From IMG/VR virus record IMGVR_UViG_3300045256_000050, positions 180,987-244,986 of that record: a stretch of DNA of 64,000 nt; one strand, given 5' to 3'. The position numbers and the translations under genes were made by a program. This document shows, one piece after another, positions 15,568 through 57,151 of the stretch. Position 1 is the first letter of the stretch; the number at the start of each line of letters is the position of its first letter. Below the pieces are notes generated by a model. The model had not been told where the DNA came from, searched no databases, and saw nothing but the letters and a program-made list of their open reading frames with translations.

Positions 15568-17340
15568 ATGACCGCCAGGATAACAGAAACTACGGTCGAA
15601 GTCCTGGCGGCTGGTGACGCTAAGGCCAGGACGACAGACGTTGCGGTCGAGATTTTGGCCGCTGGCGATGCGAAGGCACGCACCACCGAAATCACGGTGG
15701 AGGCTCTTACTGCTGGCGATGCGAAGGCACGCACCACCGAACTCTCTGTAGAAGTTCTCCTCATTTCGGAAACCCGTGCCCGTGTTACCGAGGCTACGGT
15801 CGAAGTTCTAGCCGTTACGATTAACGAATACAGCGACACTGGCTCGGGCGGTGCCGCTGTTGGCGGCGTGGCACTCCTGCCGACCCGTTGGTTCAACACG
15901 GCGTCCGGTGGTGCTGTCGTAGCCGGTGCCGCCAACGCAGAGTTCATTCTGACTGCATCTGGCGGCGTGGTCGCAAGTAGTTCGGCAACGAACACTGTTA
16001 TCCTCACGAGAACCGCTTCCGGCGGTGTCGTTGGCGGGGCTACCACTACTGTTCGACTCATCCGCCCGACGATCATTGCTTCGGGTGGTGTGGTTGGTGC
16101 GGGCGTTGCTTTCGTTAGAACCTACATCCCAGGCCGGGGCGGTGCGGTTGGCGGGGGTACGGCTCTTGTTCAATCCGCAGTTGCTTACATTAGTGCATTC
16201 GGCGGTGCCCGTCCGGGCGGGCGTGCCCTGAATGCTCAAGTCTACGGCCCCTACCGTCCCACCGGCGGTGCCCGGTTGGGTGGTACGGGCGTGCCACTTA
16301 TCTTCATCTTGGCACAGGGCGGGGCTGTCGGTGCCGGTGTTGCAAGAGTTGGCTGGTACGTCAAGCTCCGAGGCAGTGGCGGCATAGTCGCTGCCGGTTC
16401 GGCCGACAACAACATCTACGACTCTGCCCGTGGTGGAGCAGTCCTCGGCGGCACAGGTCGGGTCGCCTACCGTGCCAACGTTCAATTCGCTGCCGACGGG
16501 ATCAAAGGCGGCGGTACAGCCCGTGTTTACAAATGGGGCGATGATATCGGTCAAGGCGGTGCCCGCCCCGGTGGTTCGGCACGGGTCACTCACTTCCTTT
16601 ACCGAGTCGGCAGCGGCGGTGCCCGACCGGGTGGGGCCGCACGCTTGCTGTCTCGGACCTTCGATGTCGGGACTGGCGGTGCCGTGTGTGCGGGTCAGGC
16701 ACGAGTGGGTAAACTTTACGTCAACGTTGCCACCGGCGGTGGCGTGTGTGGCGGTATTGCGATCCAGGCTCTTACATCCGACAACGGCGTCATCAGCGGC
16801 TCGGGCGGTGTGCGTGGCGGTGGGATTAGTCGAAATACTGAGTACATGTACCGGACCGCCTCTGGCGGGGCGGTCAGCGGCAGCACGGCCACGATCCGAA
16901 AGATTACGAGACTCACGGCGACTGGCGGCGTAGTCGTTAGCGGTTTCAGTCTGTCTGAAGTAAGAATCTACGGTAAGGGCGGGGCGGTCCTGGGCGGGTC
17001 GAACGTCAACAACCACTTCATGTATGTAACGGCGAGCGGCGGGGCTGGTGTTCTGAGCGGTCAGAACATTAACACCGACATCGACTTCACCCCGAAGGCA
17101 TGCCGTCCGCCTCAGAACGAGGCTGGCATGTGTTGCAAGAAGGACAAGCGTGTATCGACACGGGTGTCGAAGCTGGAAGTGACGAATGGTCTGGCAGACG
17201 GCGTGGTGGCAGCTTCCGTCAACTGCGTCCTGCGTCGGCGGTTCAAGCTCGCCAACTCGATCTACAGTAACTCGGATAAGTTCCAGAAACGGAAGCGGCC
17301 TCCGCAGCGGTTGAGAAATACAATGACTTATTCGTCTTAA
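15568..17340 (+). CDS. Gly-rich repeat virion/fibre protein
   Basis: Five 17-aa ARxTExxVEVL repeats, then about 21 (S/T)GGAVxGG units of 18-23 aa, then a Cys-containing C-terminal domain. Confidence 0.8.
   Translation: MTARITETTVEVLAAGDAKARTTDVAVEILAAGDAKARTTEITVEALTAGDAKARTTELSVEVLLISETRARVTEATVEVLAVTINEYSDTGSGGAAVGGVALLPTRWFNTASGGAVVAGAANAEFILTASGGVVASSSATNTVILTRTASGGVVGGATTTVRLIRPTIIASGGVVGAGVAFVRTYIPGRGGAVGGGTALVQSAVAYISAFGGARPGGRALNAQVYGPYRPTGGARLGGTGVPLIFILAQGGAVGAGVARVGWYVKLRGSGGIVAAGSADNNIYDSARGGAVLGGTGRVAYRANVQFAADGIKGGGTARVYKWGDDIGQGGARPGGSARVTHFLYRVGSGGARPGGAARLLSRTFDVGTGGAVCAGQARVGKLYVNVATGGGVCGGIAIQALTSDNGVISGSGGVRGGGISRNTEYMYRTASGGAVSGSTATIRKITRLTATGGVVVSGFSLSEVRIYGKGGAVLGGSNVNNHFMYVTASGGAGVLSGQNINTDIDFTPKACRPPQNEAGMCCKKDKRVSTRVSKLEVTNGLADGVVAASVNCVLRRRFKLANSIYSNSDKFQKRKRPPQRLRNTMTYSS
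15661..15741 (+). repeat. Intragenic direct repeat, 30 nt x2, 51-nt period
   Basis: GCTGGCGATGCGAAGGCACGCACCACCGAA at 15661 and 15712. Confidence 0.9.
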
Positions 17341-18170
17341 TCCTTGCCCATGTCAACTTGGGGTTGGATGTTCGGCCTGTTGAACAGCGACGGGTCGATG
17401 GGCACATTCGTCTTTGGGTTCTTCAAGTCCATCAACATACTCAGGTTCTCTTCGGCCCAAACGTAGAGAATCTGTTTCGGCAGCCCGTCCTTGTATTCAG
17501 TAACTTCACCCGAGGCGATCACACTCCCGGCCTCGTTGCAGATGGTGAACCCGTCGATGAGCTTCGTCTTCTTGTTGATGAAGGTCATCCGTGAGATCGG
17601 CTGGCCGATGGAGTTCTTCCCCGGCTCGACCCAGATGTAGCTCTTGTTAGTCTCGACGATCTTTCCCGTGTCCACGTTGAGGTTGCTCATCCCGAGCGAG
17701 TCCATCAACAGGAACGGGCTGAACGGGGTTCGCATCCGGCTCTTGGCAAAATCTTCGTGCTTGGCGAAGTACAGTGAGGACGGGTTCATCCTTTTCGACC
17801 AGAACCAGAACTCCTTGTCGTTCGAGCCAACGTCTACCTCCTGGCCGACGATGCTCGTCACGGTGTACCGGAACTTCCGATCCTTCTCGTAGTACAAGCG
17901 GCCATTCAGACGCAGCTTGATCCCTTTCTGAAGGAAACGGATACTCACGTCTTCGCAAACAAAGGATTTGATCTGAGCGTTTCGCTCGTTAACTTCAGCA
18001 ATGACTGGTGGCGGGGCGGGCAGCGTGATCGCCGTCCGCATGTCTTCTTCGACGGCCTCGGTGGTCAGGTTGGAGTCCGGCAGGTCGCCGAACTTAGTGA
18101 AATACAAGAACCCGCCGATGAGGGGTGTCAGGATCAAGGCGAGCATTAAGAATCGCTTCGTCCATTTCAT
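17337..18170 (-). CDS. Membrane-anchored exported protein, LolA-like beta fold
   Basis: N-terminal TM helix (FLMLALILTPLIGGFLYF), beta-rich body with VGSNDKEFWFW. Confidence 0.6.
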   Translation of the reverse strand: MKWTKRFLMLALILTPLIGGFLYFTKFGDLPDSNLTTEAVEEDMRTAITLPAPPPVIAEVNERNAQIKSFVCEDVSIRFLQKGIKLRLNGRLYYEKDRKFRYTVTSIVGQEVDVGSNDKEFWFWSKRMNPSSLYFAKHEDFAKSRMRTPFSPFLLMDSLGMSNLNVDTGKIVETNKSYIWVEPGKNSIGQPISRMTFINKKTKLIDGFTICNEAGSVIASGEVTEYKDGLPKQILYVWAEENLSMLMDLKNPKTNVPIDPSLFNRPNIQPQVDMGKD

Positions 18171-18255
18171 AGTGCCTCCTTCGGGACGTAAAAAATCCCC
18201 ACGGCATAGAGAGGAGTATACCGTGGGGATTCCGAAACTACAAGCCAGTAACGAC

Positions 18256-18675
18256 TTAGTTTTCGCTGTTCAGCGTGAACTTCGGCGTCAGGTTAAGAAC
18301 GTCACCGTTAGCCAGAACACGGCTCACGGAGAAGAGTTCGGCCCACAGAGCCACACCCGACGTAGCACCGATGATCCAGTAACCGAAAATGGTCTGGCCG
18401 GTGCCCGTACACGTCCACGACTGCGGTGCGGTGCCGTAAGACGATTCGGCCTTGTTGGATACCGTAACAGCGGTGTTCCAGTTGGCACGAGAGAGGGTCT
18501 TGGCAGCGTAACCCGTGAACGTCGCTTCGACGAACGAGTTGGCACCGGAGTTCTGGTCCGGGGTGTAGTTGTTGGTGTACAACTTAAGGATGTAGTTTTC
18601 ATCGACGGACAGGGCGTCGGACAACATCTTGTCCAGAAGCTCAAGTTCGCCGAGGTTCGGTACGACTAATGGCAT
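18256..18675 (-). CDS. Phage virion/minor tail-like protein
   Basis: LKLYTNNYTP...EATFTGYAAKTL...IFGYWI...VLANGDVLNLTP pattern of small tail beta proteins. Confidence 0.65.
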   Translation of the reverse strand: MPLVVPNLGELELLDKMLSDALSVDENYILKLYTNNYTPDQNSGANSFVEATFTGYAAKTLSRANWNTAVTVSNKAESSYGTAPQSWTCTGTGQTIFGYWIIGATSGVALWAELFSVSRVLANGDVLNLTPKFTLNSEN

Positions 18676-18738
18676 ATGCAATTCTCCCAAACGAGGTTTG
18701 TAGGAATAGATATGCCTCGCTTTAATACTTTCGAAGCG

Positions 18739-18772
18739 TTTTGTAACTTGACACGCATTTTGTAACTTGACA
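18739..18772 (+). promoter_or_regulatory. Tandem 15-bp direct repeat containing TTGACA, candidate operator
   Basis: TTTTGTAACTTGACA at 18739-18753 and 18758-18772; the second copy ends on the A of the HTH gene ATG. Confidence 0.65.
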
Positions 18773-19092
18773 TGCCCAGCCCAGAAGACTTGAAGCCGTT
18801 CGTGAATGACATTGCCAATGCGGCGGTGCATTTCGGGGTTTCGGAACGGACGGTGCGTCGGTGGCTCCACGCCAGCGGGTTGACCGAGAAGAAGAGTGGC
18901 TGGGGGCCGAAGCTAAACAAGTCTCAGGTGAACGAGGTTCACCGGCTCGACCGGGAGGGCGTCAGGATCGTCGATATCGCCAAGATCATGAACGTGTCCC
19001 ACGTTGCCATCAGTAAAATCCTCAACGGCCGGACCCACACCCCGAAGGGCACGGACACGGCCATCGTTTCTGTTATCTACAACACGAATTAA
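18772..19092 (+). CDS. Double HTH DNA-binding protein
   Basis: AAVHFGVSERTVRRWL and IVDIAKIMNVSHVAISKILNG. Confidence 0.8.
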   Translation: MPSPEDLKPFVNDIANAAVHFGVSERTVRRWLHASGLTEKKSGWGPKLNKSQVNEVHRLDREGVRIVDIAKIMNVSHVAISKILNGRTHTPKGTDTAIVSVIYNTN

Positions 19093-19580
19093 CGGCCCGG
19101 CGGCTGGTACGGACCCTTGCGGGCGTCCTGTTCCGACTGCGGCGGCAGGTAGAGGTATTGGACGCAGGCGGTGATGGCCGGTAGGTACGCCCCCGTGCTG
19201 GCGAACGACTTCGGGAAGATGTTGCGCTTCGGGGCGGTGTAAAACCCGGCCTCGAAGCACTGTTGGTATTTGTTCGGGAAGCTGATCTTGCAGCCGAACC
19301 GCTTGGGGTGGCCGGTGCGTTCGCACTGGCGGTCTTTGTATACCCGGCGGACGATGGCCGTCCCGGAGATGTCGAGGACGCCGCCGTCTGTGGTGGCCGT
19401 CTTGTTGGCCGAGATCACGTTCACTTCGGCTGTGCCGCTCATATTCGCTCCCCCATCACCGTAAAAGTAGCCGTGACCGGCAAGCGAAGCGATGAGGGTC
19501 GTCCGTTGCTGTTGGGTTTGGCTCGCTGCCAAGAGGACGAGCAATTGAAGAATCGTTGCGTATTCGCTTGCGGTGGGCAT
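19089..19580 (-). CDS. Short member of the Gly-repeat virion protein family
   Basis: Two GG-repeat units plus Cys-rich C-terminus with GAYLPAITAC; TAACTA 4 nt before ATG. Confidence 0.6.
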   Translation of the reverse strand: MPTASEYATILQLLVLLAASQTQQQRTTLIASLAGHGYFYGDGGANMSGTAEVNVISANKTATTDGGVLDISGTAIVRRVYKDRQCERTGHPKRFGCKISFPNKYQQCFEAGFYTAPKRNIFPKSFASTGAYLPAITACVQYLYLPPQSEQDARKGPYQPPGR

Positions 19581-19678
19581 ACTTTAGTTACTCGGAAAAG
19601 GCAGAAATTCGGGTTGAGCGGATAAATAAACTGTCAAGCGGTATATAGAAACAGCGTCCGATGAAGGAGACACAATCT

Positions 19679-20926
19679 ATGATGAGTTACAAAGCATGGC
19701 GGACCATCAACCAGAAGTTGATGAATGAGTCTGCTCTTGGTACTTCGACCCTGGGCCTCAAGACGCCTGCTTCGTTGGGCATCACTGGAAGCAAGCTTGC
19801 TGAGATGGGTTTCCCACCACCCGAGGGCGAAGACGATGATGACCTGATGGGTCATGATGACGGCACCGAGTCGGACATCGACCCGGATGGCGACGGCGAC
19901 GTGGATGTTCCGGGTGCTGGCCCGGACCTAGACCCGGATCAAGATGCCGATGAGCTTCACGGCATGGACGACCCGGCGATGCTCGCTCTCTTGGGTGACG
20001 ACGACGGCGAACAGGGCGATGATGAAGTTGCACCGGAAGGTGACGACGCATCGGCTCTCGGCGGCGACGACGGCATGATGGGCGGCGACGAGGACGAGTT
20101 CTCGTTCGACCCGGCCGACCTGGGTGACGACGCTCACGCAGTTCCCGACATGGGCAAGTCGGCCGACCTGAGCAACCTGCTCGGCGGCATGGGCGTGTCC
20201 CCGCATGACCAAGCCCCGGACATGGGCTTCGGCGACGAAGGCGATGAGGGTGCTGACATCAGCAGCCTGTTCGGTGGTGCTGGCGACGAAGGCGATGAGG
20301 GTGGCGAAGACGCCGCTCCGGCTAAGGGTGCCAACCCGTTCGGCGGCGAAGACGAGGGCGACGATGACTCCGCTCCTCAAGGCGAAGCCGACGATGACAA
20401 CATCGAAGACGAACTCGACAGCGACATGGACGACGACGATTCCGACGACGCAGAGTCCGACGAGGGCGGCGACAAGGAGTCGGAGTCCGATGACGACAAG
20501 AAGTTCATGGGCAAGGGCTGGTGCAACAAGATGATGAAGAAGGAAGGGAAGGAGTTCCCGGCTTTCTTGAAGAAGGGTAAGGACAAGGACGACAAGAAGG
20601 GCGGTAAGAAGGCTCCCCCGTTCGCCAAGAAGGGTGAGAAGAAGAAGGACGACAAGGGTCCGAAGCCGTTCGAGTTGTTCAAGAAGGGTGGCAAGAAGAA
20701 GGAAGAGAAGGTTGACGAAACCTCGTTCTTCCGCAGCCTCACCAAGCAGGCCGCTGGCGACGTTCGCAAGCTGAAGGAAGACTCCCTGGTGGCGTCCCCG
20801 AAGCAAGCCAAGCGTGAGCCGGGTCCGGGCGAAGTGGGCTACGCCCCGAGCGGTCGGGTTGGTCAACTCCCGAGCGTTGCGTCCTACAACGAGTGGAAGG
20901 CCAAGAACTTCCCGAAGAAGAAGTAA
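19679..20926 (+). CDS. Acidic disordered protein with Lys-rich tail; putative prohead core/internal protein
   Basis: MMSYKAWRTINQKLMNES leader, long D/E/G tract, K-rich block; AAGGAGA SD; TAAATA 19623 and TATATA 19642. Confidence 0.7.
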   Translation: MMSYKAWRTINQKLMNESALGTSTLGLKTPASLGITGSKLAEMGFPPPEGEDDDDLMGHDDGTESDIDPDGDGDVDVPGAGPDLDPDQDADELHGMDDPAMLALLGDDDGEQGDDEVAPEGDDASALGGDDGMMGGDEDEFSFDPADLGDDAHAVPDMGKSADLSNLLGGMGVSPHDQAPDMGFGDEGDEGADISSLFGGAGDEGDEGGEDAAPAKGANPFGGEDEGDDDSAPQGEADDDNIEDELDSDMDDDDSDDAESDEGGDKESESDDDKKFMGKGWCNKMMKKEGKEFPAFLKKGKDKDDKKGGKKAPPFAKKGEKKKDDKGPKPFELFKKGGKKKEEKVDETSFFRSLTKQAAGDVRKLKEDSLVASPKQAKREPGPGEVGYAPSGRVGQLPSVASYNEWKAKNFPKKK

Positions 20927-20942
20927 CCTTCACCAAATGAAG

Positions 20943-20968
20943 AAGCCCGGCGAAAGCCGGGCTTTTTT
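20943..20968 (+). terminator. Rho-independent terminator
   Basis: AAGCCCGGC-GAAA-GCCGGGCTT followed by TTTT, 17 nt after the stop. Confidence 0.9.
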
Positions 20969-20992
20969 CGTTTACAGTTCTTCGGAGCCGAA

Positions 20993-21080
20993 AGCCCCTA
21001 CAGTGAAACTGCTACCCCCACAAGCGAGCGACCGAAGGGAGCGAGACGTGGGGGTAGCCCTTTAGGGTAGGGGATGAAGG
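20993..21080 (+). mobile_element. IS200/IS605-type subterminal hairpin region (candidate left end)
   Basis: Nested stems CCCCTAC/GTAGGGG and CTACCCCCAC/GTGGGGGTAG plus CCC-TTTA-GGG...GGGGATGAAG; the TTTA loop also occurs in the right end at 24161. Confidence 0.45.
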
Positions 21081-21174
21081 CGATGGGCTAAAGATGGGCT
21101 TAAAAGTTTCTATCCCTCAAAGCACAAACACAACACAGTACCACAGGACACAATCAGGACTACGACCACCCCGC

Positions 21175-21420
21175 TCAAGAGTTCCTACATTTTTCCTGAC
21201 CTTCCAGTTCGTACAACTGGAACAATACCTCCTGATACTTCCCCTCGTCCGTATCAGGGTACACGTCCTTGAAGTGCTTCATCCCCACGTCGGACTGGAC
21301 GTACTCCAACAGCCGCATCCGGGCTTCGTTCTCGTCCCTGCCAGCAGGACCGTAGAACTCACCGATAGTACCGACTACCAATTTAGGTTTTCCGACGTAA
21401 ACCGGGCAAAACTCAACCAT
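21175..21420 (-). CDS. Hypothetical protein
   Basis: GGAGG SD, lies just downstream of tnpA. Confidence 0.55.
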   Translation of the reverse strand: MVEFCPVYVGKPKLVVGTIGEFYGPAGRDENEARMRLLEYVQSDVGMKHFKDVYPDTDEGKYQEVLFQLYELEGQEKCRNS

Positions 21421-21447
21421 ATCTTCCTCCACCTTATCTTAGTGTAC

Positions 21448-21861
21448 TCAACCCTGTTCTTCGATGTACTTCTTGATCGTCTCCGTACTGGCGTCTCCAG
21501 TGGTACACACGAAGTACCCGTCACTCCAGAAGGTCTTCTCCTTCCAGAAGTGATACGCCAAGAAGTTACCAAACTTCTTCCAGATGTGGAAGGTCGATTG
21601 GCTCTTGAGCCGGGTGGCGATACTGGTCGGGGACAGGGTGGGTGGAGCGTCTACGAGAACGTGGATGTGGTCGATGTCCACTTCCATCACGTCAATGGCG
21701 AAACCGCTTTTGTAGGCGATGTCGGTGAACAGCGTCTTGATCTCGTCAGCGATGTTCTGCTTGGCGAGCAGCTTCTTCCTGTACTTGCAGGCGAAGACGA
21801 AGTGGTACTTGAGCAGGTACTTGCTGTGGCTGGCGTGGTGGTACTTATCTTCCTTCGGCAT
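21448..21861 (-). CDS. tnpA: IS200/IS605 Y1 (HUH) transposase
   Basis: YHFVFACKYRKK, DHIHVL (HUH), LKSQS, FWSDGYF, IKKYIEEQ (catalytic Tyr). Confidence 0.95.
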   Translation of the reverse strand: MPKEDKYHHASHSKYLLKYHFVFACKYRKKLLAKQNIADEIKTLFTDIAYKSGFAIDVMEVDIDHIHVLVDAPPTLSPTSIATRLKSQSTFHIWKKFGNFLAYHFWKEKTFWSDGYFVCTTGDASTETIKKYIEEQG

Positions 21862-21877
21862 GACACTCTCCAGAAGT

Positions 21878-21908
21878 GAGACAAGCCCGGCAGAGCCGGG
21901 CTTGTCTC
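21878..21908. repeat. Perfect 14-bp hairpin upstream of tnpA (IS end or terminator)
   Basis: GAGACAAGCCCGGC-AGA-GCCGGGCTTGTCTC. Confidence 0.8.
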
Positions 21909-21923
21909 TGTTCGAGAGCCAGA

Positions 21924-22304
21924 TCAGACCCGAACCGGCTTGCAGTTCAGCGGACCCATCAGACCGGCTGGCTGCGGGAAGTACCCCCACGGCTTGCTAC
22001 CCCAGATGCTCGCCCCAGCGTCCCCGTCCTTCCAGCGGATGACCACGAACTCCTCCTCCCGCTCCACCGAGAGGTAGGTGATCCTGCCCGTCATCTGGTC
22101 GTCCGAGAACTTGTCTACGAGCGACTTGGCGTTGTCCCACGACCCCTTGATCCTGAGCATGTTACACCCGGCGTCCGGGTCCGTGGCATCAGTCGCCGTC
22201 CGGCTGATGTGAATGTGGCTCTGACCCGCCACCAGTCCTGCCGCTGGAATGGCGATCCCAAAACTTGTTCCCGCCATCGCTTTCAGTGCGTTCCGTCTGT
22301 TCAT
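21924..22304 (-). CDS. Putative Tat-exported protein
   Basis: MNRRNALKAMAGTSFGIAIPAAGLVAG twin-arginine leader. Confidence 0.6.
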   Translation of the reverse strand: MNRRNALKAMAGTSFGIAIPAAGLVAGQSHIHISRTATDATDPDAGCNMLRIKGSWDNAKSLVDKFSDDQMTGRITYLSVEREEEFVVIRWKDGDAGASIWGSKPWGYFPQPAGLMGPLNCKPVRV

Positions 22305-22391
22305 CTTCTTGCTCCTGTTTCTCGCCGTATCTGAACCGGATGCCGAACACCAGTCCGAGGGGCGGTTTCAACGGCTCCACCCTGATAAGAG

Positions 22392-22877
22392 TTAACTCAA
22401 ACACTTCATGTTCTCCCAAACGTGGTACTCGTCGTCGTCTTGCACCACGCCTACCTTCCTCATCCCCGCCTTTCCGAACAACCTGTCGTAGATCGCCGCC
22501 CTCTGGTTCGTTGGCTCCTTCTCCACCCCATCCACCGTCTTTCGCTTCTCCGGGGTGTACACCATCCTCAAGCCCGCCTTCGACAACTCCCCTCCGAACT
22601 CTTGCAACTTCCGCATGAGCGGCATGGTACTCGGCTGAACCGACTTCGACACGGTACTCAGGTCTGCACCCAAATCGTCAGTGTTAAAGAACGCCACGAT
22701 GACGTAGGGGATGTTGCTGGCGTTGTCCGGTCCTCGGAGTTGGGCGTAGATGGTTTTGTCGAGGAACGGTATCCAGTACACGTCGTTTTCGGGCTGGATG
22801 TTGCCGAACACCTTCTGGACGACGGCGTGGAGTCGGTCTTGCTGCTCCTCGTTTTCGAGCCATGTCTTGAAACGCAT
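22392..22877 (-). CDS. Putative internal virion protein (CTS-like N-terminus)
   Basis: Starts MRFKTWLENEE; TAGATA 4 nt before ATG. Confidence 0.7.
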   Translation of the reverse strand: MRFKTWLENEEQQDRLHAVVQKVFGNIQPENDVYWIPFLDKTIYAQLRGPDNASNIPYVIVAFFNTDDLGADLSTVSKSVQPSTMPLMRKLQEFGGELSKAGLRMVYTPEKRKTVDGVEKEPTNQRAAIYDRLFGKAGMRKVGVVQDDDEYHVWENMKCLS

Positions 22878-22972
22878 ATCGTATCTATCCGGTCGGGTCT
22901 GTCAATCCCCGGCGAATAAAAATTTCCGGTTTTCCGTCCGAAAACAGAACCCAGCCGACTAACTAATACCAG

Positions 22973-48759: not shown

Positions 48760-49707
48760 ACCACAGATCGGGGCGGACACGTTGGAGAACCAGTCGAATG
48801 CTTCGTCGGGCTTCGGGTTGGCCCACGCCCGGTAGCGGTTGTAAGCGAGGTTGCTCGGTTCGGCGTAGCTTTTCTCCAGTCCCTTGAGAATCCAGGGCAG
48901 GAGCATGAGGCCGGGCTTATTGAACACGTCGGCCAGGATGCCAATGCCGCTGGGGAAGTAGAACCCGTAGTCGATGTCCTGCATGCAGTACAGGGCGGTG
49001 CTGAGCTTTTCGCCGATCACCTTACGGCACGGTGCCCGTTGTTCCATCACGTTCGCCACCGCTTCCGTTTTGTCCCGGTCGTACTCCGCACCGAGGAACA
49101 TGAAGCTGCCTTTGCCTAAGAACCCGTAGACCTTCGTCAAGAAATCGATCCACTGCTGCTCTGACCACAGACTCCATCCGCCCGCTTTCTGTCTGTCCTT
49201 GTCCCGGTTGGAGATGTAGACGGCGATAATCGGCTTGGGCAGGTTTGCCATTAGTTTCGATCTGGCGTCGGCGTCCACGCCGGTGAACTTCAGCCCGTAG
49301 TGATAGCTGATCGGGAATGGCTTGAGCCAGTCGGCGAGGGGTCGGCCGGATTCAAGGTGTACGTTGGCTGAGAGGTTCTGGACCCACGGCTTGTCAACGA
49401 ACCCGAGTCCGCCGATGGTCATGGGCCAATCGGCGGGGAGGCACTGGCTGATGACCTGCCATGCGTTCCGGTCCTCCATGTACCCGCCCCAATGGACGTT
49501 GGGGAGCATCTTAACGAACTCGCCGCCCCGGTTCATTTCGCCCCGTGAGGCGACCGAGACGATGATCTCTTTGCCCAGCTTCTCTTTGAAGTGCATCAGT
49601 TTGGTGTAGACCCAACTGATGTCCCCGATGCCGCACGGGAGGCAGTAGTGACAGCACTTCTCGGGTCCGCCGAAGTCGGCGGGGGTGTAGATTTTGTCTT
49701 CGCTCAT
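48751..49707 (-). CDS. GT9-like (GT-B) glycosyltransferase
   Basis: CGIGDISW, FLGAEYD, FPSGIGILAD. Confidence 0.6.
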   Translation of the reverse strand: MSEDKIYTPADFGGPEKCCHYCLPCGIGDISWVYTKLMHFKEKLGKEIIVSVASRGEMNRGGEFVKMLPNVHWGGYMEDRNAWQVISQCLPADWPMTIGGLGFVDKPWVQNLSANVHLESGRPLADWLKPFPISYHYGLKFTGVDADARSKLMANLPKPIIAVYISNRDKDRQKAGGWSLWSEQQWIDFLTKVYGFLGKGSFMFLGAEYDRDKTEAVANVMEQRAPCRKVIGEKLSTALYCMQDIDYGFYFPSGIGILADVFNKPGLMLLPWILKGLEKSYAEPSNLAYNRYRAWANPKPDEAFDWFSNVSAPICGLV

Positions 49708-50723
49708 TACTTCAGGAACGGGGTTAGATCGAACTTCTTCACGACGGACTCTGGGCTGCTGCTGAACAGGTCGGCGAAGAACTTGGTTTCGATGTTCTCT
49801 TTTTTGCACCATGTATAGGTCATCGGCTTGAGGTAATCGTAATACAACATCACTTGCGGTACATCCAGGTTGTCGGCGATGATGTTCAGGCCGGACTGGT
49901 AGCCGATGAAGAGGCTGCTGTTGTTGATGATGTGACAGACCTTAGCCGGAGCCTCGTTCATGTAGGAAACCGTCTCGATCCGACGCTGGGCGAGTCCCAG
50001 GGACACTTCCTCAATCGCCTCTTTGTCGAATTTCGCTCCGATGACGACGATGGGCAGGTCCGGGTTGTACTTCGAGTAGAGCAGGTCAACGTACTCAAGC
50101 CACTGGTCGATGCTCCAACACGGCAGGTTGCGGTTCTTGGCACTCCCAGAGACGTACAAGGTCATGTAGTTCTCGAACGGCACCTTGATGGGTTCCATCT
50201 TAAGCGGCACGTCGGTCATGACCGTCAGGTCGTCGATCTCGTCCAGGCGGGTGCCGTCTTCGAGCCATTTGTTGACGGCGTAGGGCACGGAATCCAGGTT
50301 GTACGACCCCTGCCAGTTTTTGATAGTAGCGGACAGGTCGTACTTGGTCGCCGCCATTTCGTTGTACAAGTTGCCCTTCACTAAGCGAAGTTTCACTTCG
50401 CCGACCTGCGGCAGCAGTGACATCCAGGGCAGGGAGCGGTTCTGAACGTGGTCGAGGACGACCACGCAAATGTTCAGGTTGATGGTCTTAAAGTGCGGGG
50501 CAACCTTCTGGTAGACCCAGAAGATGTCGCCGAGTCCTTGCACCACGTCGAGGGTGATGTAGTCCTTCGGCGGCGGCGGTGTTGTTTTAACCCGCTTCGG
50601 CGTTACTTTTTGCTGTCTCACAGCGACCGGCTTGCGACTTACCACTTTTCGCCCCATTTGTTGTTCCTTAAGTTTTGCAACACGTCTGTGAAACAAATCT
50701 TGCCTGACCTGATTGTTGCTCAT
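49707..50723 (-). CDS. GT9-like (GT-B) glycosyltransferase, paralogue of the adjacent gene
   Basis: QGLGDIFW, VIGAKFD, FIGYQSGLNIIAD. Confidence 0.62.
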   Translation of the reverse strand: MSNNQVRQDLFHRRVAKLKEQQMGRKVVSRKPVAVRQQKVTPKRVKTTPPPPKDYITLDVVQGLGDIFWVYQKVAPHFKTINLNICVVVLDHVQNRSLPWMSLLPQVGEVKLRLVKGNLYNEMAATKYDLSATIKNWQGSYNLDSVPYAVNKWLEDGTRLDEIDDLTVMTDVPLKMEPIKVPFENYMTLYVSGSAKNRNLPCWSIDQWLEYVDLLYSKYNPDLPIVVIGAKFDKEAIEEVSLGLAQRRIETVSYMNEAPAKVCHIINNSSLFIGYQSGLNIIADNLDVPQVMLYYDYLKPMTYTWCKKENIETKFFADLFSSSPESVVKKFDLTPFLK

Positions 50724-51799
50724 ATCATCATCTTGCTGTTGAATTCCTTCACATTCTCCCGCTTGGATTGCCAGAAGTGCAGGAGTTTACGGCCGACGAC
50801 GAAGTAGCGATTCATTTTCAGTTCAGAGTCGAGGCCCATGTCCCTCAGCAGATCACGGATATGATCGTAGTCCGATGCCGGAACATTATTCGGGACGACA
50901 TAGATTAGCACTTTTCCGCCAGCTTCCTCCTGCAAAAACTGTAGGTTCATGTACGACCCCTTCAGGTCGTTCATCAGACCCGGCATGTAGAACGGCTCGC
51001 CGTGGCTGTTCCGAATCGCCTTTCGGACGTGCGGCAGGAAGTTCAGTTCGCAGGCCGTCGCCCCGCACGGACACTTGAAGAAGTTCTTCATCTCGAACAG
51101 GTCGGACCCGTCGGCGATCTCCCGGTGGAGGTTCAACATGTTGCGGTACTTGCCGCCCTCCAGGCAGGCGAAGGTCGGCAGGACGTGCTTGTTCCCGAAC
51201 CGGCAGGTACGGAAGTTCAGGCCACTCTTCCAGTCGATCATCTGGTCGTTGTGCAGGATCGACCGACGCATCAGCGGTTCCGTGTCGTAGGTCGTCAGGT
51301 ACTTGATCTTGTCGGCGTTGGCTTTGATGTAGTCGGCCAGCTTCGGGTCGGTGGTCGGGAAGATGAAGTCGGCGGGACGGCCGCTCAGCCACACCGAGCC
51401 TGGGGCGGACTCGATGGTGTCGATCAGTGAACCCGGCTTCACGCTCTCCAGGTTGATTTCCGTCTGGGCGTTCTCCGGGTTACGCAACTGGTTGGTGACG
51501 TTCTCACGCCAGTAGTTGTAGTTGCCATCGAAGGCGTATGCGGTCGGCGTCCCGCTGATCGAGCCGTTGGACATCATCATGAAGGCCGGGGCTTGTGTGT
51601 CCACCGCCGTCTTGTTCAACTCCAGGGTGCGGACCGTGGGTTCGAACAGCGGGTTGGCCTCGGCCAGTTCCCGGAGTTTTTCGATGTCCTCGTCGAACGT
51701 GGTGTAGTCGTAGTTCGTGACTTCGGCCAGCAGCTTGTCGGCGGTTTCCGGGTTGGGGTCGCCGTGGTAGTTTTCGTAAGCTTGCGTGAGATTGGACAT
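50720..51799 (-). CDS. Putative AMP-forming ligase-like (PaaK/CapK-like) protein
   Basis: SNGSISGTP resembles the P-loop SSGTTGxP; C-terminal LQFLQE...LIYVV. Confidence 0.4.
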   Translation of the reverse strand: MSNLTQAYENYHGDPNPETADKLLAEVTNYDYTTFDEDIEKLRELAEANPLFEPTVRTLELNKTAVDTQAPAFMMMSNGSISGTPTAYAFDGNYNYWRENVTNQLRNPENAQTEINLESVKPGSLIDTIESAPGSVWLSGRPADFIFPTTDPKLADYIKANADKIKYLTTYDTEPLMRRSILHNDQMIDWKSGLNFRTCRFGNKHVLPTFACLEGGKYRNMLNLHREIADGSDLFEMKNFFKCPCGATACELNFLPHVRKAIRNSHGEPFYMPGLMNDLKGSYMNLQFLQEEAGGKVLIYVVPNNVPASDYDHIRDLLRDMGLDSELKMNRYFVVGRKLLHFWQSKRENVKEFNSKMMI

Positions 51800-52023
51800 T
51801 ACTGTATTACCGCCATGTTTGGCTCGGGCCAGTAAACGGTCCCGTAGCATAAGATGTGATATTTAGTCACGCCGGGTGCTACTTCTTCCGTGATCGTCTC
51901 GCAAGGAATGCGAATGCTGATGTGGTGCGCCAGGGACTCCTGGTTGTTAATAAGTAAACGCCACTTCCGGCCCTGGGGGTCGTCGGAGTGCTTGGTGTTG
52001 AAGCGAATGAGGATTCTGTCCAT
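51799..52023 (-). CDS. Hypothetical protein
   Basis: TAATG coupling. Confidence 0.55.
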   Translation of the reverse strand: MDRILIRFNTKHSDDPQGRKWRLLINNQESLAHHISIRIPCETITEEVAPGVTKYHILCYGTVYWPEPNMAVIQ

Positions 52024-52059
52024 AAAAAAAGGAGGCCGGTTGGCCTCCTTCTCCTTTCT

Positions 52060-52281
52060 TTAGTACCAGGGCTTGCAGCAGTTCTCCATTTTCCGCTCGA
52101 TGTCCTTGAGTTTGTCAAGGATGGCGAGCAGTCCGGCCACTACGAGAACATCCGTCGAGTGCAACGGATGTTCTTTGATGAACTCCCCGACCTGTACGAC
52201 GTATTTCGCTAAGTCCTCTGCTGAGGTTGGCTCACGCAGGTGCTTGCAGCAGGGTTCGTCGCACTGGTCGTGTTCACTCAT
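52060..52281 (-). CDS. Hypothetical small protein
   Basis: MSEHDQCDEPCC; coupled to the upstream gene. Confidence 0.5.
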   Translation of the reverse strand: MSEHDQCDEPCCKHLREPTSAEDLAKYVVQVGEFIKEHPLHSTDVLVVAGLLAILDKLKDIERKMENCCKPWY

Positions 52282-53197
52282 CGCTATCCTCTTGTCGATT
52301 GAAGAAATACTGGTTGATATCGGCGTGCATCCCCGGCTTGTCGGTGGCCCATTCCCACACGTTGTTGACAAGCTTGATGTCCTCAGCAGGATTGTAATCG
52401 TACTTGAGGATGATGTCGTGCCGGTCCATGTACGCACGGTTCTTCAGGCTGCCGTGCCACAGGTGGTAGATATCAATAGGTAGATAGTCAAGAACGAGCG
52501 GTTTCTTCTGGAACTCGTCCCGCCATGCACCCATGTGCTTCTTCATGTGTTCATTAAACTTCTGAGCGTAGCCGTGGATGTCCCAGGAGTTCAGGCAGCA
52601 GTCCACCATGTAGGTGTCGCCGCTTCCGATGATGTTCCGGTCATACACGCCACCCAAGTCCTCGAAGAACTTCCGGTTCGCACCCCAGGCGAAGCCCGGC
52701 GACGAGAACGGCAAGTCCTTCTTCTTCCGGCGCTCCAGCCAGTTCTTGTGGATCAAATACTGCCAAATCACGCCCTGGAACATGAGTTCCTTCGTGCCCT
52801 GCCAAGACCGATGGCCCCGAGGGAGGTAGTTGATCCGCTTGAAAAGCTGGATGATGTGCGCCTTCTTGAACTTCTCGACCGCCTGCTCGACCCAATCGTC
52901 AGCCGAGAACAGAACATCGCAGTCCAGCCAGCCGAAATACTCACAGCTACTCGGCAGTTGGGACAGCCCGTAGTTAATCAACCGCTCTTTTTGCCACATC
53001 ACGCTGTTGCCACGCAGCCGGGCTACGTTGTGGGTGGTCGGAATCTCGAAATCGTTGTCGCCGAACGCCATCTCCACCGTCAGCAAGTTCACACCCTGCC
53101 GCTTCAGGTTTTCTGCAAACGTGAAGTAGTTTTTCAGGATGTTCTTGTACCCCGCCGGGTTGAAGAACGTAGTGATGGCCCAGAATTTGTTGTTCAT
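52274..53197 (-). CDS. GT-A fold glycosyltransferase-like protein
   Basis: ITTFFNP, WQKERLINYG, WLDCDVLF (DxD), PGFAWG, GSGD, HLWH; GAGGAGG SD; TAGATA upstream. Confidence 0.75.
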   Translation of the reverse strand: MNNKFWAITTFFNPAGYKNILKNYFTFAENLKRQGVNLLTVEMAFGDNDFEIPTTHNVARLRGNSVMWQKERLINYGLSQLPSSCEYFGWLDCDVLFSADDWVEQAVEKFKKAHIIQLFKRINYLPRGHRSWQGTKELMFQGVIWQYLIHKNWLERRKKKDLPFSSPGFAWGANRKFFEDLGGVYDRNIIGSGDTYMVDCCLNSWDIHGYAQKFNEHMKKHMGAWRDEFQKKPLVLDYLPIDIYHLWHGSLKNRAYMDRHDIILKYDYNPAEDIKLVNNVWEWATDKPGMHADINQYFFNRQEDSDE

Positions 53198-53294
53198 AGC
53201 TCCTCCTCTGTAAACAACTGCGTTATCTAAGCTTATTACGGAAACAAAATCGGAGGACGCTGACCCCTATATACCTGAACAAGAGAGGGCTTCA

Positions 53295-53720
53295 ATGAGC
53301 GTAATTCAACAACTTTTCAGTGACCCGATTTCGGTGCCGATCCCCCTGGAGTTTCAACCGACGGGTACGTTCACCGAGTCGGCTGTGGTTGACAACACGA
53401 CGGACCGATTTATTTCGGCCGACATCCAGCTTTCCGTTCAGCCGGACAACGGCAGTCCGGGCGGCGACGGATTCATTAAGGTCTACCTGATGCGGTCGCT
53501 GGACAACGTGGAGTGGGACGACCCGACGGAAGACTGCACCCTGTTGGCCGTGTGGACGGCGAACCAGGGCGGGGTGAACTTCACGCACAGCATTGACACA
53601 GACGTGGTGGGCAACCTGCCGCCGTATTGGAAGATTCTGGTCGAGAACCGGACCGGGACGGCTTTCGATGGGACTGGCAACTCGCTGAGTTTCGTCGGAA
53701 AGAAGTTCGAAACCGTCTAA
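53295..53720 (+). CDS. Putative virion beta-sandwich protein
   Basis: TATATA at 53268; beta-rich; heads a virion-type operon. Confidence 0.6.
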   Translation: MSVIQQLFSDPISVPIPLEFQPTGTFTESAVVDNTTDRFISADIQLSVQPDNGSPGGDGFIKVYLMRSLDNVEWDDPTEDCTLLAVWTANQGGVNFTHSIDTDVVGNLPPYWKILVENRTGTAFDGTGNSLSFVGKKFETV

Positions 53721-53732
53721 CCTGGAGATTCC

Positions 53733-55232
53733 GTGCGTTACCACATTCGACCACAGCACCATTACATGCCGAGCTTGGCAAACTACGGTCATTCGTGGGG
53801 CCGGAGCAACGTTGCGTCTGCTGTCCCGGACAGCATCCAGACCGGGCCGTATGAGAATCAGGCCAGATCATTCCGACCGAGAGGCGCACCCGGCAAGGCG
53901 TACTTCCTCTACGATCCGGGAGACAACGGACAACCGGAACACCGCTGGCTCGCCAAGTGGAGTATGTTACCCAGCATGTACGAAGGGACGGGTGCGACCG
54001 TCTCTTTCGGCTTCAAGTGGAGCGGGCAGCAGGGCCACGTCATGTGGTTCGGCGACGTGACTAATGAGTTTCCCCAGGGGATCGAGGCGAAGATCACCTT
54101 CGAATCGGAAATCTCTCAATTCTTCCTACGCTTCGGCATCTTTGTCAATGCTACGGAGTCTGTGGGCACTGTCACGGCTCCGCTGATCTCGGGCGAGGAT
54201 TACCACTTCACGGCTGTGTTTCTGCCGGAGATTGTAAACCTCGGCGAGTTTAGCGGCATCGGGCGGTGGAGGATATACCGAAATGGTCTGCTCGTTGACA
54301 GCAGTTCCACCACTGGCTTCAACAACATCGACATCAGCATCACGACGCCTAGCTCCTTCTACGTCGGGACTGATTACCTGGGCGACCGGCTGTTCAACAG
54401 CCCGATCTACGATTTGAAGATGTTCTACCGGCCTCTCAGCCACAACGAGGTATGGAACAGTTACTTCTACGATTACATCAAGGAACAGAAACAAGTCCCG
54501 CTGACCGCCCTGGCTGTTGAATCAGACGGCCCAGACCGGACAGCTTCCGGCGGGGCAAGGGTTGGCGGTAACGGTGACGTAACGGCCGACTATGACATCG
54601 TTGCTGACGGCGGTGCTGTACTTGCTGGTATGGCCGACGAATTCTACGTCCACAACGGCAGCGTTGTGTATGATGAGTTCGCATCGGGCGGTGCCGTACT
54701 GGCCGGTTCGGCAGTTGTAAGAAAGATCGTCCCGTTCAGTGTAACGGGTGGTGCCGTACTGGCCGGTTCGGCAGTTGTAAGAAAGACGTTCAGACACACC
54801 GCAACGGGCGGGGCGGTGGTAGCCGGGTTCGCACTGAGAACGGCCAACTACTTCGTCCAAACGACCGGCGGCATCGAGGCAGGCGGGTCGCTGACAACCA
54901 TCGCTACCGAATACGCTTCTGGCGGCGTGTCGTGCGGCGGCAGCTTTGTACTGAAGAGAGGCACGGTACGTCCGAAGCGGCAGAGCGAGTGCTTTGACGC
55001 AAAGGTGTGCAAGCTACGGATTCAACAGATTGGTTCACTCAGTCGTCGAGTTTACATTGAAGACCAATGTCGTCGGCCGTTCCGTCTGTGGGATGGTTAT
55101 GTGCCGGGTGCGGCGTCGTGCCCAGGCGAAATACAGTTCACCCGCATTCTGAAGGTTCAGACGGCAGTCGGGTACAAGAACCCGAGGGATAGAGGCAAAT
55201 TGCCTAACAGTAACTTCGGCGACGTGAGATAA
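53733..55232 (+). CDS. Virion protein: LamG/ConA-like domain + Gly repeats + Cys C-terminus
   Basis: DYHFTAVF...IYRNG...FYVG...IYDLKMFYRPLS..EV LamG pattern; TGGAVLAG repeats; GTG start. Confidence 0.75.
   Translation: MRYHIRPQHHYMPSLANYGHSWGRSNVASAVPDSIQTGPYENQARSFRPRGAPGKAYFLYDPGDNGQPEHRWLAKWSMLPSMYEGTGATVSFGFKWSGQQGHVMWFGDVTNEFPQGIEAKITFESEISQFFLRFGIFVNATESVGTVTAPLISGEDYHFTAVFLPEIVNLGEFSGIGRWRIYRNGLLVDSSSTTGFNNIDISITTPSSFYVGTDYLGDRLFNSPIYDLKMFYRPLSHNEVWNSYFYDYIKEQKQVPLTALAVESDGPDRTASGGARVGGNGDVTADYDIVADGGAVLAGMADEFYVHNGSVVYDEFASGGAVLAGSAVVRKIVPFSVTGGAVLAGSAVVRKTFRHTATGGAVVAGFALRTANYFVQTTGGIEAGGSLTTIATEYASGGVSCGGSFVLKRGTVRPKRQSECFDAKVCKLRIQQIGSLSRRVYIEDQCRRPFRLWDGYVPGAASCPGEIQFTRILKVQTAVGYKNPRDRGKLPNSNFGDVR
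54690..54786 (+). repeat. Intragenic direct repeat, 37 nt x2, 60-nt period
   Basis: GGTGCCGTACTGGCCGGTTCGGCAGTTGTAAGAAAGA at 54690 and 54750. Confidence 0.9.
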
Positions 55233-57151
55233 TGAGCGAAGAAGCCCCACTACTCGGATCGGACTCGGCCGTCTTAGGCACGATGTCCATTGGTGAAACG
55301 GATGCCCAGACGGCGTACACCGCCGCCCTGGGTACGTCCGACTCCACGTTCGGGTACATGGTGATGGGCGTCCCGCCGACCACCGACGACAACTTCACTT
55401 CGATCCTCGGTATCGAAGCGTCCCGGCCCGCCAACATTGAACCCGCAGCAGTCGAAGACGCCGCCCGTTATGACGAAGTGGCGTCCGGTGGTGTGGTCGT
55501 CGGCGGTGGCAACCGGATTTACAACGAAGTCGGTTCTGGTGGTGTTCTCGGCGGCGGTACGGCTCGCTTCGGCCGGATCATTAACTCGGCCAACATCGTT
55601 AACGCATCCGGTGTGCGTGGCGGCGGCACGGCCCGCTTCAACTGGTTCGTCTACCGCACGGCGAGCGGCGGTGCCGTCGTCGGCGGGTTCAGCCCGGCCG
55701 AACACGGCATCATTCCGAGCGGCGGGGCCAAAGTCGGTGGCAGCTTCATCAACCAGCACATTCTGGCTCGTACTGCAACCGGCGGTGCCCGACCGGGTGG
55801 TTTGTGCATTAACACCGTTCGTTTGGTGTACACCGCTACGGGTGGTGCTAAGGGTGGCGGTATCGGTGATCCGACTTACACCCCAGGCGTGTTCGTCGGT
55901 GGTACGGCCACGAACACCCAGATCATGCCCCGTGTGGCATCGGGTGGTGGTCGTGTTGGCGGTACGGCCGTTCTCGGCGGTAACACAACCTTCGTGGCGG
56001 CGGGCGGTGCCCGTCCGGGTGGTACGGCTCGGTTCAACACCATCAAACCTGCTTTCGTTGCGAGCGGCGGTGCGGTTGTATCTGGTAGCGGTAACGATAC
56101 TGAAGATCATCCGGGGTTGTTCGGCGATGGCGGCGTGGTCGTCGGTGGTTCCGCAACTCGCCAGTTCTATGCGATGTGGGTCGCTACAGGCGGGGCACGG
56201 GTCGGCGGCTCGGTGCCCACCATTGAGTACATCTCCCAGGTCGCCACCGGCGGCGTGGTGTGTGCAGGTATTGCGGTTGTGGAGGCCGGGACGTTCACCT
56301 TCGGCGGGGCCGACGTGGGCGGATCGGCTACCATCCAGATCACGTCAAACAAGACGGGGACCGGCGGGGCTGTCTGTGCTGGTGTGTCTCTTACCCGACA
56401 CTTGTTACGGTATATCTCTACGGGCGGCGGCGTGTGCAGCGGCCATGCGAATCCGTTCGGCACGGCCCGAGACTACACGGCCACGGGCGGGTTCCGGGCT
56501 GGCGGACCGCTGGTTCTGTTCTCGATCTTCAACATCCGCCCGCAAGGTGGGGCACGGCCCGGCGGCACCGCCATCCCAAACACGACCATCAGAACTTCTG
56601 GTGGAGCGGTGTGTGCAGGTACGGCCCGAGTTGTTAAAGTCCAAGTTGCCCAGACATCGGGCGGCGTGGTCTGCGGCGGTGCTACGCAGCCGATCAGTTA
56701 CATTGGCACCTACGGCGGGGCTGTGGTCAGCGGCCAAGCCACCATCAACAACTTCATGTATCGGACGGCCTCGGGCGGTGCGGTGTGTGGGGGCACGGCT
56801 GTCGCCAGCTTGGTCACTGTTTCTTATGTCGCCTCGGGTGGTGCGGTGGCTGGCGGTTCGGGCGAATTCAAACGAGACACGTCGGGTCGAATCCGGTGTG
56901 AGCCGCCTGCCCTGGCCTGCCCGATCATCAAGGTGAAGCCGCCGGGTCGCCCGTGCGTCAAGGAGAAGGTGCTGCGTGGCGGCATCGTTCTGGCGGCGAC
57001 GGTGTGCAAGTACAACAAGAAGGTCGGGAAGCTGTTGAAAGACCCGGCCAACACCCAGACCATCACCCAAACGGCCATCGGCTTCAGTTCGGGCAACAGG
57101 TCTACACCGTACCAGCCGCCGGGCACCCCGAAACCGGGACAGCCGCTCTGA
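55232..57151 (+). CDS. Gly-rich repeat virion/fibre protein
   Basis: More than 20 (S/T)GGAVxGG units; Cys-containing C-terminus; paralogue of 15568-17340. Confidence 0.8.
   Translation: MSEEAPLLGSDSAVLGTMSIGETDAQTAYTAALGTSDSTFGYMVMGVPPTTDDNFTSILGIEASRPANIEPAAVEDAARYDEVASGGVVVGGGNRIYNEVGSGGVLGGGTARFGRIINSANIVNASGVRGGGTARFNWFVYRTASGGAVVGGFSPAEHGIIPSGGAKVGGSFINQHILARTATGGARPGGLCINTVRLVYTATGGAKGGGIGDPTYTPGVFVGGTATNTQIMPRVASGGGRVGGTAVLGGNTTFVAAGGARPGGTARFNTIKPAFVASGGAVVSGSGNDTEDHPGLFGDGGVVVGGSATRQFYAMWVATGGARVGGSVPTIEYISQVATGGVVCAGIAVVEAGTFTFGGADVGGSATIQITSNKTGTGGAVCAGVSLTRHLLRYISTGGGVCSGHANPFGTARDYTATGGFRAGGPLVLFSIFNIRPQGGARPGGTAIPNTTIRTSGGAVCAGTARVVKVQVAQTSGGVVCGGATQPISYIGTYGGAVVSGQATINNFMYRTASGGAVCGGTAVASLVTVSYVASGGAVAGGSGEFKRDTSGRIRCEPPALACPIIKVKPPGRPCVKEKVLRGGIVLAATVCKYNKKVGKLLKDPANTQTITQTAIGFSSGNRSTPYQPPGTPKPGQPL

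Follow-up and report, generated by a model that had tools for sequence, protein, structure and literature searches.

Huge phages are known almost only through metagenomes, and their surface proteins are mostly without annotation. The window analyzed here, a 64,000-nucleotide stretch of DNA, spans bases 180,987-244,986 of the 244,986-bp IMG/VR virus record IMGVR_UViG_3300045256_000050 (window positions carry the prefix w; other positions on the record are called genome positions), and encodes a family of proteins built from tandem Ser-Gly-Gly (SGG) repeats joined to a small, basic domain with four cysteines. CheckV puts the completeness of the record at ~48%, and the phage is therefore probably ~0.5 Mb in size; its source is probably a huge, uncultured tailed phage. 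An earlier sequence-only reading of the window proposed four open reading frames (ORFs) as a family, and all were found at exactly the coordinates it gave: P0001 (590 residues, w15568-17340, + strand), P0002 (163 residues, w19089-19580, - strand), P0003 (499 residues, w53733-55232, + strand, with a database start at w53766) and P0004 (639 residues, w55232-57151, + strand), the ATG of which overlaps the P0003 stop by 1 nt. Residues 1-17 of P0004 are kept in its relative P0036, which supports the long start. The contig in fact carries six members rather than four. The fifth, P0009, encodes 601 residues at genome 164667-166472 (- strand), and the sixth lies at genome 23379-24428 (+ strand). All six feature tandem units of 18-21 residues with an invariant GG and the pattern [ST]-G-G-[AV]-x-x-[GA]-G-x-A, and the family proteins match one another at E 1e-11 to 3e-21 in BLAST searches within the contig. 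These ORFs, which are read without need for an alternative genetic code, are real genes of one previously unnamed family, and the finding is broader than the sequence-only reading described.

The repeat units were delimited by splitting the proteins at the invariant GG. Their lengths run from 18 to 21 residues with a mode of 20 (29 of 63 intervals measure 20 residues, 15/63 measure 18 and 8/63 measure 21), and their consensus is T-[GA]-S-G-G-A-[VR]-[VCGP]-G-G-[ST]-A-x-V-x-x-[IFY]-x-x-x. This spacing bears out the earlier estimate of units of ~18-21 residues, numbering from 2 to more than 20 per protein: P0001 carries ~20 (w15838-17079), P0002 only 2 (w19344-19463), P0003 7 (w54540-54965) and P0004 ~24 (w55478-56872). 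A cysteine at unit position 8 ('GGAVCGG') was considered as a glycosylation site and set aside, given that it alternates with Val, Pro and Gly and is read as core-facing. Exact 37-nt duplications had been described in the plural; there is one such pair, w54690-54726 and w54750-54786, common to two adjacent 60-nt units within P0003 (w54690-54786, + strand). The 60-nt, 2.2-copy array that holds it is the only array called by TRF, and the other units have diverged at the DNA level.

What precedes the repeats differs between proteins. P0001 begins with 17-residue 'AR(I/V)TExxVEVL' repeats (w15574-15830), within which a 30-nt exact duplicate (w15661/w15712) lies in 51-nt repeats; this N-terminus matches phrog_13560, a family of unknown function. 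P0003 begins with a LamG/ConA-like head (w53994-54452) that falls just short of the Pfam Laminin_G_3 cut-off of 27.6 bits, scoring 25.3 bits with the whole protein and 26.9 with the N-terminal part (E 6e-6 to 2e-5). Of the lectin domain proposed for each of two window cassettes, the one in P0003 thus stands near threshold, and the proteins of the P0001 cassette and their neighbors have no Pfam LamG match.

The basic, Cys-rich end domains are alike in composition. All five full-size tails (P0001, P0002, P0003, P0004 and P0009), taken as the sequence past the last unit, comprise 84-93 residues with an isoelectric point of 9.6-10.4 and exactly four cysteines. Within the window they occupy w17080-17337 in P0001 ('DGVVAASVNC'), w19092-19343 in P0002 ('GAYLPAITAC'), w54966-55229 in P0003 ('DGYVPGAASC') and w56873-57148 in P0004 ('GGIVLAATVC', with the end 'PYQPPG...'). 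In 22 external representatives, the Cys-rich stretch ends in A-[YFILVK]-[LV]-P-[AP]-I-[TI]-x-C-[RNQ]-Q-[KR], and two cysteines are invariant when these modules are aligned with P0002, in which they are C97 and C139. A profile hidden Markov model (HMM) of the 22 external modules, run against 2,614 contig ORFs, detects P0002 at E 6e-10 with the module and 1.6e-5 with the core; the sixth member is marginal (E 0.04-0.2). The proposal that an alignable Cys motif closes all four window proteins is therefore not borne out, since P0002 is the only one of the four that this profile detects. The tails of P0001, P0003, P0004 and P0009 share with P0002 their position, length, charge and four cysteines, and a relative of P0001, P0047, reads 'DGYVAASVVC' and so bridges the motifs of P0001 and P0003. 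A relaxed motif pattern gave six contig matches against 1.9 expected, covering 5/6 family members, which is weak evidence as the pattern was written post hoc. Our reading is that all tails belong to one module class, of which P0002 alone is demonstrably canonical.

Comparison with relatives refines this picture of the module. Between P0004 and P0034 the Cys module is identical at 49/50 positions and the repeats are 57% identical, which indicates strong constraint on the module. A second (type B) tail, 'WCDV..C.EG[VC]LPxI[IV]xNRQ...PPK', can be aligned with the first type; the core is therefore LPxI[TV]x[CN]RQ, in which the last Cys is replaceable by Asn. The position of the LPAITxC motif also varies, being N-terminal in some proteins and 100-250 residues from the end in others. 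Within the 245-kb contig, 'PYQPPG' occurs in the last 15 residues of P0002 and P0004 only (w19092-19115 and w57130-57148), and a close P0004 relative reads 'PYQLPG'. Two named C-terminal devices were rejected: a sortase LPXTG sorting signal, as the motif is L-P-A-I-T-x-C followed by polar and basic residues with no hydrophobic span, and a Peptidase_S74 chaperone tail, to which there is no match. Neither the repeat nor the Cys module matches a family in Pfam or PHROGs, in agreement with the earlier statement that no named family could be assigned.

The repeat region is likely a beta-solenoid, as judged from a low-confidence model. AlphaFold2 modeling of P0004 from a 66-row alignment gave a mean predicted local distance difference test score (pLDDT) of 44, rising to 60-78 over residues 365-550, with strands in every unit, about three short ones each. 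When this model is compared with known structures by VIA-align, it matches single-chain parallel beta-helices over ~280 residues at Z 12-16.8. The best match is 3p4g, a Ca-dependent beta-helical antifreeze protein (Z 16.8, 277 residues, root-mean-square deviation 3.9), and others include Vag8, EtpA, UpaB, the HMW1 secretion domain, many phage tailspikes and TibA (Z 12). The monomer check suggested by the sequence-only reading thus yields a beta-rich, low-confidence model that aligns to the expected class of fold. The Pfam Beta_helix, AIDA and pertactin models do not match the window proteins, and PDB sequence searches with P0004 returned no match. P0002 was modeled from a 23-row alignment at pLDDT 53, with its module region at 54-75 and forming a small sheet with a short helix over 'AITACVQ'; its Atlas model has pLDDT 0.36, and an Atlas search with it returned nothing usable.

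Beyond the contig, an exhaustive search of 1.84 billion proteins identified 183 metagenomic representatives at E<=1e-3, of which 35 reach <=1e-10 and several come from contigs of 330-690 kb, and a word search found 27 metagenomic proteins. The best external matches are at 3e-75, or 2e-79 for a close relative. These relatives comprise up to 5,666 residues and carry from 2 to more than 60 units, in support of the modular architecture of variable unit number that had been proposed. Among the 110 relatives with a sizeable N-terminal part, Pfam finds Laminin_G_3 in 33/110 (best E 1e-57) and Laminin_G_2 in 7/110; other heads include CBM96, SPRY, pentaxin, sialidase-N, FG-GAP and beta-helix. From this survey, the typical layout is a lectin-like head, SGG repeats and a C-terminal module. 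The contigs of several relatives measure 164-693 kb and carry release-factor-like, HNH and PTH2 genes; we read them as other huge phages. Giant members of the family include P0035 (5,666 residues, on a 539-kb NCBI contig) and P0037 (3,460 residues), in which no fewer than 67-74 SGG units and as many as 15 separately matching stretches occur. A further linear motif, 'NTPQMA[SK]L[KR]', is conserved in the long, basic tails of P0007, P0013 and P0021, which belong to the same clade as the 693-kb contig. A tblastn search with P0001 found no homologue among 50,697 GenBank phage records, and IMG/VR, when scanned with P0001 and P0004, yielded no phage other than this one. The Cys region of P0007, used in a word search, retrieved the query alone.

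On the contig itself, the two members outside the window extend the family in different directions. P0009 shares with P0001 both the 'ARxT..VEVL' N-terminal repeats and the C-terminal tail (BLAST 3e-21, tail included). The sequence-only reading took the two window cassettes for paralogues; the true paralogous cassette of P0001 is that of P0009 and lies outside the window. The sixth member has its Cys motif ('RAYLAAVTVCQ') at the N-terminus, then four units, and in its C-terminal region no Pfam match. It belongs to an adhesin-like cluster at genome 17942-24428, together with a 665-residue protein of repeated Ig/FN3-like segments and LamG_3 (E 5e-10).

Genomic context ties P0001 and P0009 to a class of phage tail genes. 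Directly upstream of P0001, a 362-residue phrog_2448 protein (w14477-15565, + strand, PHROG E 1.2e-34) has its stop 2 nt before the P0001 start. In Chi-like (YSD1_33), phiCbK-like (gp103) and Brevundimonas phages, homologues of phrog_2448 follow the tip-attachment or large tail proteins and precede the lysis genes. Four phrog_2448 paralogues flank P0009, three in tandem upstream and one downstream, with 32-47% mutual identity (genome 163633-169516, locus L038); this is a tandemly amplified tail-tip-type cassette. The 'ARxT..EVL' repeat recurs in the same company: it ends a lectin-like protein two genes past the phrog_2448 homologue in Brevundimonas phage Fanboy, and it lies beside the phrog_2448 homologue of LR756511.1 (430897-431088). 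The pairing with phrog_2448 and the presence of this repeat thus tie P0001 and P0009 to tail-tip-type modules. The repeat is N-terminal in P0001 and C-terminal in the lectin-like, glycine-rich Fanboy protein, and may be a docking repeat. As an observation in its own right, the 17-residue 'AR(I/V)T..(V/L)E(V/A)L' repeat occurs near phrog_2448 genes in three unrelated lineages (w15574-15830, L009:11060-12442 and LR756511.1). The 362-residue protein has a confident Atlas model and belongs to a virus-only family. It has no match in PDB sequence searches, and its likeness to LamG is limited to language-model features that point to a LamG_3 cluster (score 0.94, 160 shared features). The YSD1/Chi-like phage literature searched makes no mention of YSD1_31 to YSD1_35, a range that takes in YSD1_33, the phrog_2448 homologue.

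The canonical module also occurs outside the SGG proteins. A strict DNA pattern for LPAITxCRQK gave 0 matches in IMG/VR, and the degenerate pattern A.LPAIT.C.Q matched 8 places, of which 8/8 are real. One is P0002 and another a 913-residue beta-propeller (DUF5122) protein ending in the Cys-rich motif. The remainder are free-standing ORFs of 57-63 residues with four cysteines that end '..SAWLPAITVCRQxLFx'. These tiny four-Cys genes form 17 clusters of 66-90% identity, match no PHROG family and have nothing on record in Pfam. In every locus examined, the tiny gene lies 12-40 nt downstream of a gene for a glycosyltransferase of family GT2 of ~250 residues (Pfam E 1e-11 to 1e-15). The loci fall into two lineages, the GT2 of the second (L028) being only 31% identical, and in one lineage the tiny gene is also convergent with a DUF6065 gene. 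These cassettes of a GT2 gene, a tiny four-Cys gene and, in some, a convergent DUF6065 gene (L031:8994-9956, L028:293-1292, L024, L026, L029, L030 and L032:9233-11033) sit on viral contigs of 18-110 kb. The tiny-cassette GT2 matches only generic GT-A enzymes in the PDB, the DUF6065 protein has no PDB sequence match, and nothing on DUF6065 was found in the literature. Given that the module is N-terminal in the sixth member and stands alone elsewhere, it is an independently folding, autonomous domain.

Glycosyltransferase genes are found near several SGG genes as well. A GT47-like gene adjoins P0013, a weak GT7C-like gene lies two genes before P0007, and weak GT-A signals were detected near others. 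Within the window, a bona fide GT2 gene (w47947-48759, + strand, Pfam PF00535 E 6.5e-13) lies 5 kb upstream of P0003. A 307-residue gene divergent from P0003 (w52274-53197, - strand) contains 'WLDCD' and gives a weak Pfam GT2 signal below the cut-off (E 6e-4); profile comparison of its family with bona fide GT2s by hhalign gives no support. Divergent from the P0001 operon, w12335-13993 (- strand) encodes a protein with TPR repeats and, toward its C-terminus, a weak likeness to GT9 (E 0.0034); it has paralogues at w41713-42651 (- strand) and genome 55421-57046 (- strand) and matches the PDB via its TPR part only. The TPR plus GT9-like layout recalls protein glycosyltransferases of the O-GlcNAc-transferase type.

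The small size of P0002 can be explained by comparison with locus L035 of a relative phage, in which the order is a 309-residue gene, P0088, a convergent helix-turn-helix (HTH) gene, a 140-residue gene and, further on, a 262-residue gene. P0088 comprises 980 residues with LamG, SGG repeats and the canonical module. The window retains the corresponding neighbors beside P0002: a 106-residue HTH-like gene (w18772-19092, + strand, with faint matches to HTH families) that is convergent with P0002, overlaps its 3' end and is 34% identical to the HTH gene of L035; a 139-residue gene of unknown function (w18256-18675, - strand), 67% identical to the 140-residue gene; and a 277-residue gene of unknown function (w17337-18170, - strand), which is convergent with P0001, is homologous to the 262-residue gene (E 6.5e-61) and has no Pfam or PHROG match. 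P0002 thus stands at the site of the 3' end of the full-length gene in L035, and is therefore probably a truncated remnant of a LamG-SGG gene. From the gene order, it was probably left by rearrangement near an IS200/IS605 element, the genes of which (Y1 transposase, w21448-21990, - strand; TnpB/OrfB, w22973-24136, + strand) are 2-4 kb away. The 309-residue gene of L035 is a homologue of the 307-residue gene at w52274-53197 (8e-38), so that adjacency to a LamG-SGG-Cys gene is kept there. The two window cassettes apparently hold separate parts of a single ancestral locus, broken up by rearrangement.

Elsewhere, the contig encodes a T4-baseplate-family gene, many glycosyltransferases and the IS200/IS605 element, and a 1,841-residue ORF that looks by eye like a tape-measure protein. 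The closest GenBank relative for one neighboring gene is the 595-kb uncultured phage LR756511.1. The window also features LAGLIDADG, DnaJ, SpoU methylase and AdoMet decarboxylase genes at w~44.2-48.1 kb and a tRNA-Leu (anticodon TAG) at w62409-62483 (- strand).

We propose, at about even confidence, that the SGG proteins are modular fibers or adhesins of the phage surface, made up of a variable head that resembles a lectin, a rod of beta-solenoid fold and a conserved Cys module docked on the particle. Receptor-binding proteins are usually built in this way, with one end variable and ligand-binding and the other conserved. In the proposed arrangement, one end would bear a variable head or adaptor, LamG/ConA-like in P0003 and about one third of relatives; in P0001 and P0009 the head would be replaced by the 17-residue 'ARxT..VEVL' repeats, in genes paired with proteins of phrog_2448 tail-tip modules. 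Each 20-residue SGG unit would form one three-stranded coil of a parallel beta-solenoid, and the length of the rod would scale with unit number. With ~0.48 nm per coil, 2 units would make a rod of ~1 nm, 7 units one of ~3 nm and 20-24 units one of ~10-12 nm. The other end would be the small basic four-Cys module, canonically ending A-x-L-P-A-I-T-x-C-R-Q. The lectin-like end would bind host or environmental glycans, and the Cys module, as the constant end, would dock on the particle or assemble with it. We infer the virion location from gene context, and the anchoring role likewise. Several of our observations pull the other way. The SGG genes on the contig are interspersed with RNA ligase, Prim-Pol, insertion sequence elements and glycosyltransferases, with no clear tail operon. 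The tails of P0001, P0003, P0004 and P0009 escape the external-module profile, which leaves them putative members of one shared module. The mean confidence of the P0004 model is low, and its fold match is possibly a generic solution for repeats, solenoids matching one another easily. Lastly, in every locus examined, across two lineages, the free-standing four-Cys genes lie just downstream of a GT2 gene, an arrangement no less suited to a modification substrate than to an anchor.

That last association leads to another reading, unlikely in our judgment and able to coexist with fibers. Phage glycosyltransferases would here recognize the LPAITxC module, or use it as their acceptor, as a tag that can be carried by different proteins; the SGG proteins would be glycosylated surface proteins, with a constant end conserved for being read by an enzyme and not for docking on the particle. 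This reading would account for the motif-bearing SGG genes near the GT47-like (P0013), GT7C-like (P0007) and weak GT-A-like genes, as well as for the window GT2 upstream of P0003 and the TPR plus GT9-like gene beside the P0001 operon, and a short linear motif conserved amid unalignable surroundings is as expected of an enzyme recognition site. However, by BLAST and HMM searches neither the tiny-cassette GT2 nor DUF6065 has a homologue on this contig, and the 307-residue neighbor of P0003 is unsupported as a glycosyltransferase by profile comparison. Huge phages carry many glycosyltransferases, such that some adjacency is expected by chance, and the tiny-protein loci are mostly one closely related group (66-90% identity). 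Moreover, type B tails have Asn in place of the motif Cys, contrary to S-glycosylation of that residue. A fuller version, in which the module is a protein-modification tag, most likely for glycosylation, that is fused to solenoid fibers in huge phages and is a 59-residue stand-alone glycopeptide in the GT2 - peptide - DUF6065 cassettes of smaller phages, is unlikely. If true, it would mean a phage system of protein glycosylation not described before, equipped with a sequon domain of its own, by which huge phages sugar-coat their surface. For the role of the Cys module, a docking end remains our first choice over a tag read by glycosyltransferases.

The scatter of the SGG genes among non-structural genes would also suit proteins that never join the virion, namely exported or lysis-released free adhesins, matrix binders or cell-surface modifiers acting in receptor masking or polysaccharide binding. 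The four cysteines without CxxC pairs suggest disulfides, hence an extracytoplasmic setting, and secreted adhesins (EtpA, UpaB, the HMW1 secretion domain, TibA and Vag8) are among the top structural look-alikes. Set against this are the close coupling of P0001 and P0009 to a gene family of phage tail-tip modules and the lack of an obvious signal peptide or long hydrophobic segment in the N-termini, read by eye with no predictor run; we consider a non-virion role improbable. The low AlphaFold2 confidence over most of P0004 and P0002, the Atlas pLDDT of P0002 and the failure of 3/4 tails in the profile test raise a more skeptical view, that the repeats are disordered Gly-rich linkers, or the ORFs are spurious products of GC-rich DNA with a Cys motif that arose by chance. 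We disfavor this view as highly improbable. The period of 18-21 residues is strict, with position-specific hydrophobic residues, and strands are predicted in every unit. The 183 diverged homologues reach E values down to 3e-75, close relatives keep the proteins end to end with a Cys module 98% identical, and the canonical motif recurs in independent lineages.

Known systems offer partial parallels to the proposed fiber architecture. Single-chain parallel beta-helix adhesins and phage tailspikes of pectate-lyase-like fold, such as CBA120 TSP3, the HK620 tailspike, EtpA, UpaB and the 19-residue-repeat autotransporters TibA and AIDA-I, likewise stack three-stranded, Gly-marked coils of ~20 residues in a rod, on the SGG side as modeled, and serve in the modular surface or adhesin role that we propose for the SGG proteins. 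The SGG unit 'SGGAVxGGxA' is nonetheless distinct, and the proteins lack both the autotransporter beta-barrel and the tailspike N-terminal adaptor. In TibA and AIDA-I, dedicated glycosyltransferases act on the repeats, a parallel to the glycosyltransferase neighborhood here. T4 Hoc, a decoration protein of Ig-like domains, presents its N-terminal binding domains outward and holds the particle by a conserved C-terminal domain. Hoc-type decoration proteins thus show the same inverted polarity relative to tail fibers as proposed for the SGG proteins, but the two have no relation in sequence or fold, and to place SGG proteins on the capsid would be pure conjecture. Among tail proteins, the distal tail modules of Chi-like, phiCbK-like and Brevundimonas siphophages resemble the P0001 locus in combining a phrog_2448 homologue with the 17-residue 'ARxT..VEVL' repeat; by tblastn of P0001, those phages lack the SGG repeats and the Cys module, and the cassette here exists in duplicate and is not part of an obvious tail operon.

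The free-standing module has a parallel of its own in the glycocins. Sublancin is encoded by SunA beside the GT2 enzyme SunS on prophage SPbeta, and the tiny four-Cys gene is similarly a small Cys-rich peptide beside a GT2 on a phage genome. In contrast to glycocins, the tiny-gene loci that were read show no leader peptide, transporter or thiol-disulfide oxidoreductase genes, their GT2s of ~250 residues lack the SunS-type peptide-binding extension, and the Cys spacing differs. The module is moreover mostly fused to large fiber-like proteins, and the window proteins are not peptides.

Overall, these data describe two reusable building blocks without a Pfam or PHROG family, the 20-residue SGG repeat, probably of solenoid fold, and the four-Cys module with its linear motif. 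These blocks help to recognize candidate host-recognition or decoration proteins in huge phages, with a fiber length that would be predictable from repeat number, and the pairing of the free-standing module with GT2 makes the hypothesis of phage-encoded protein glycosylation directly testable.

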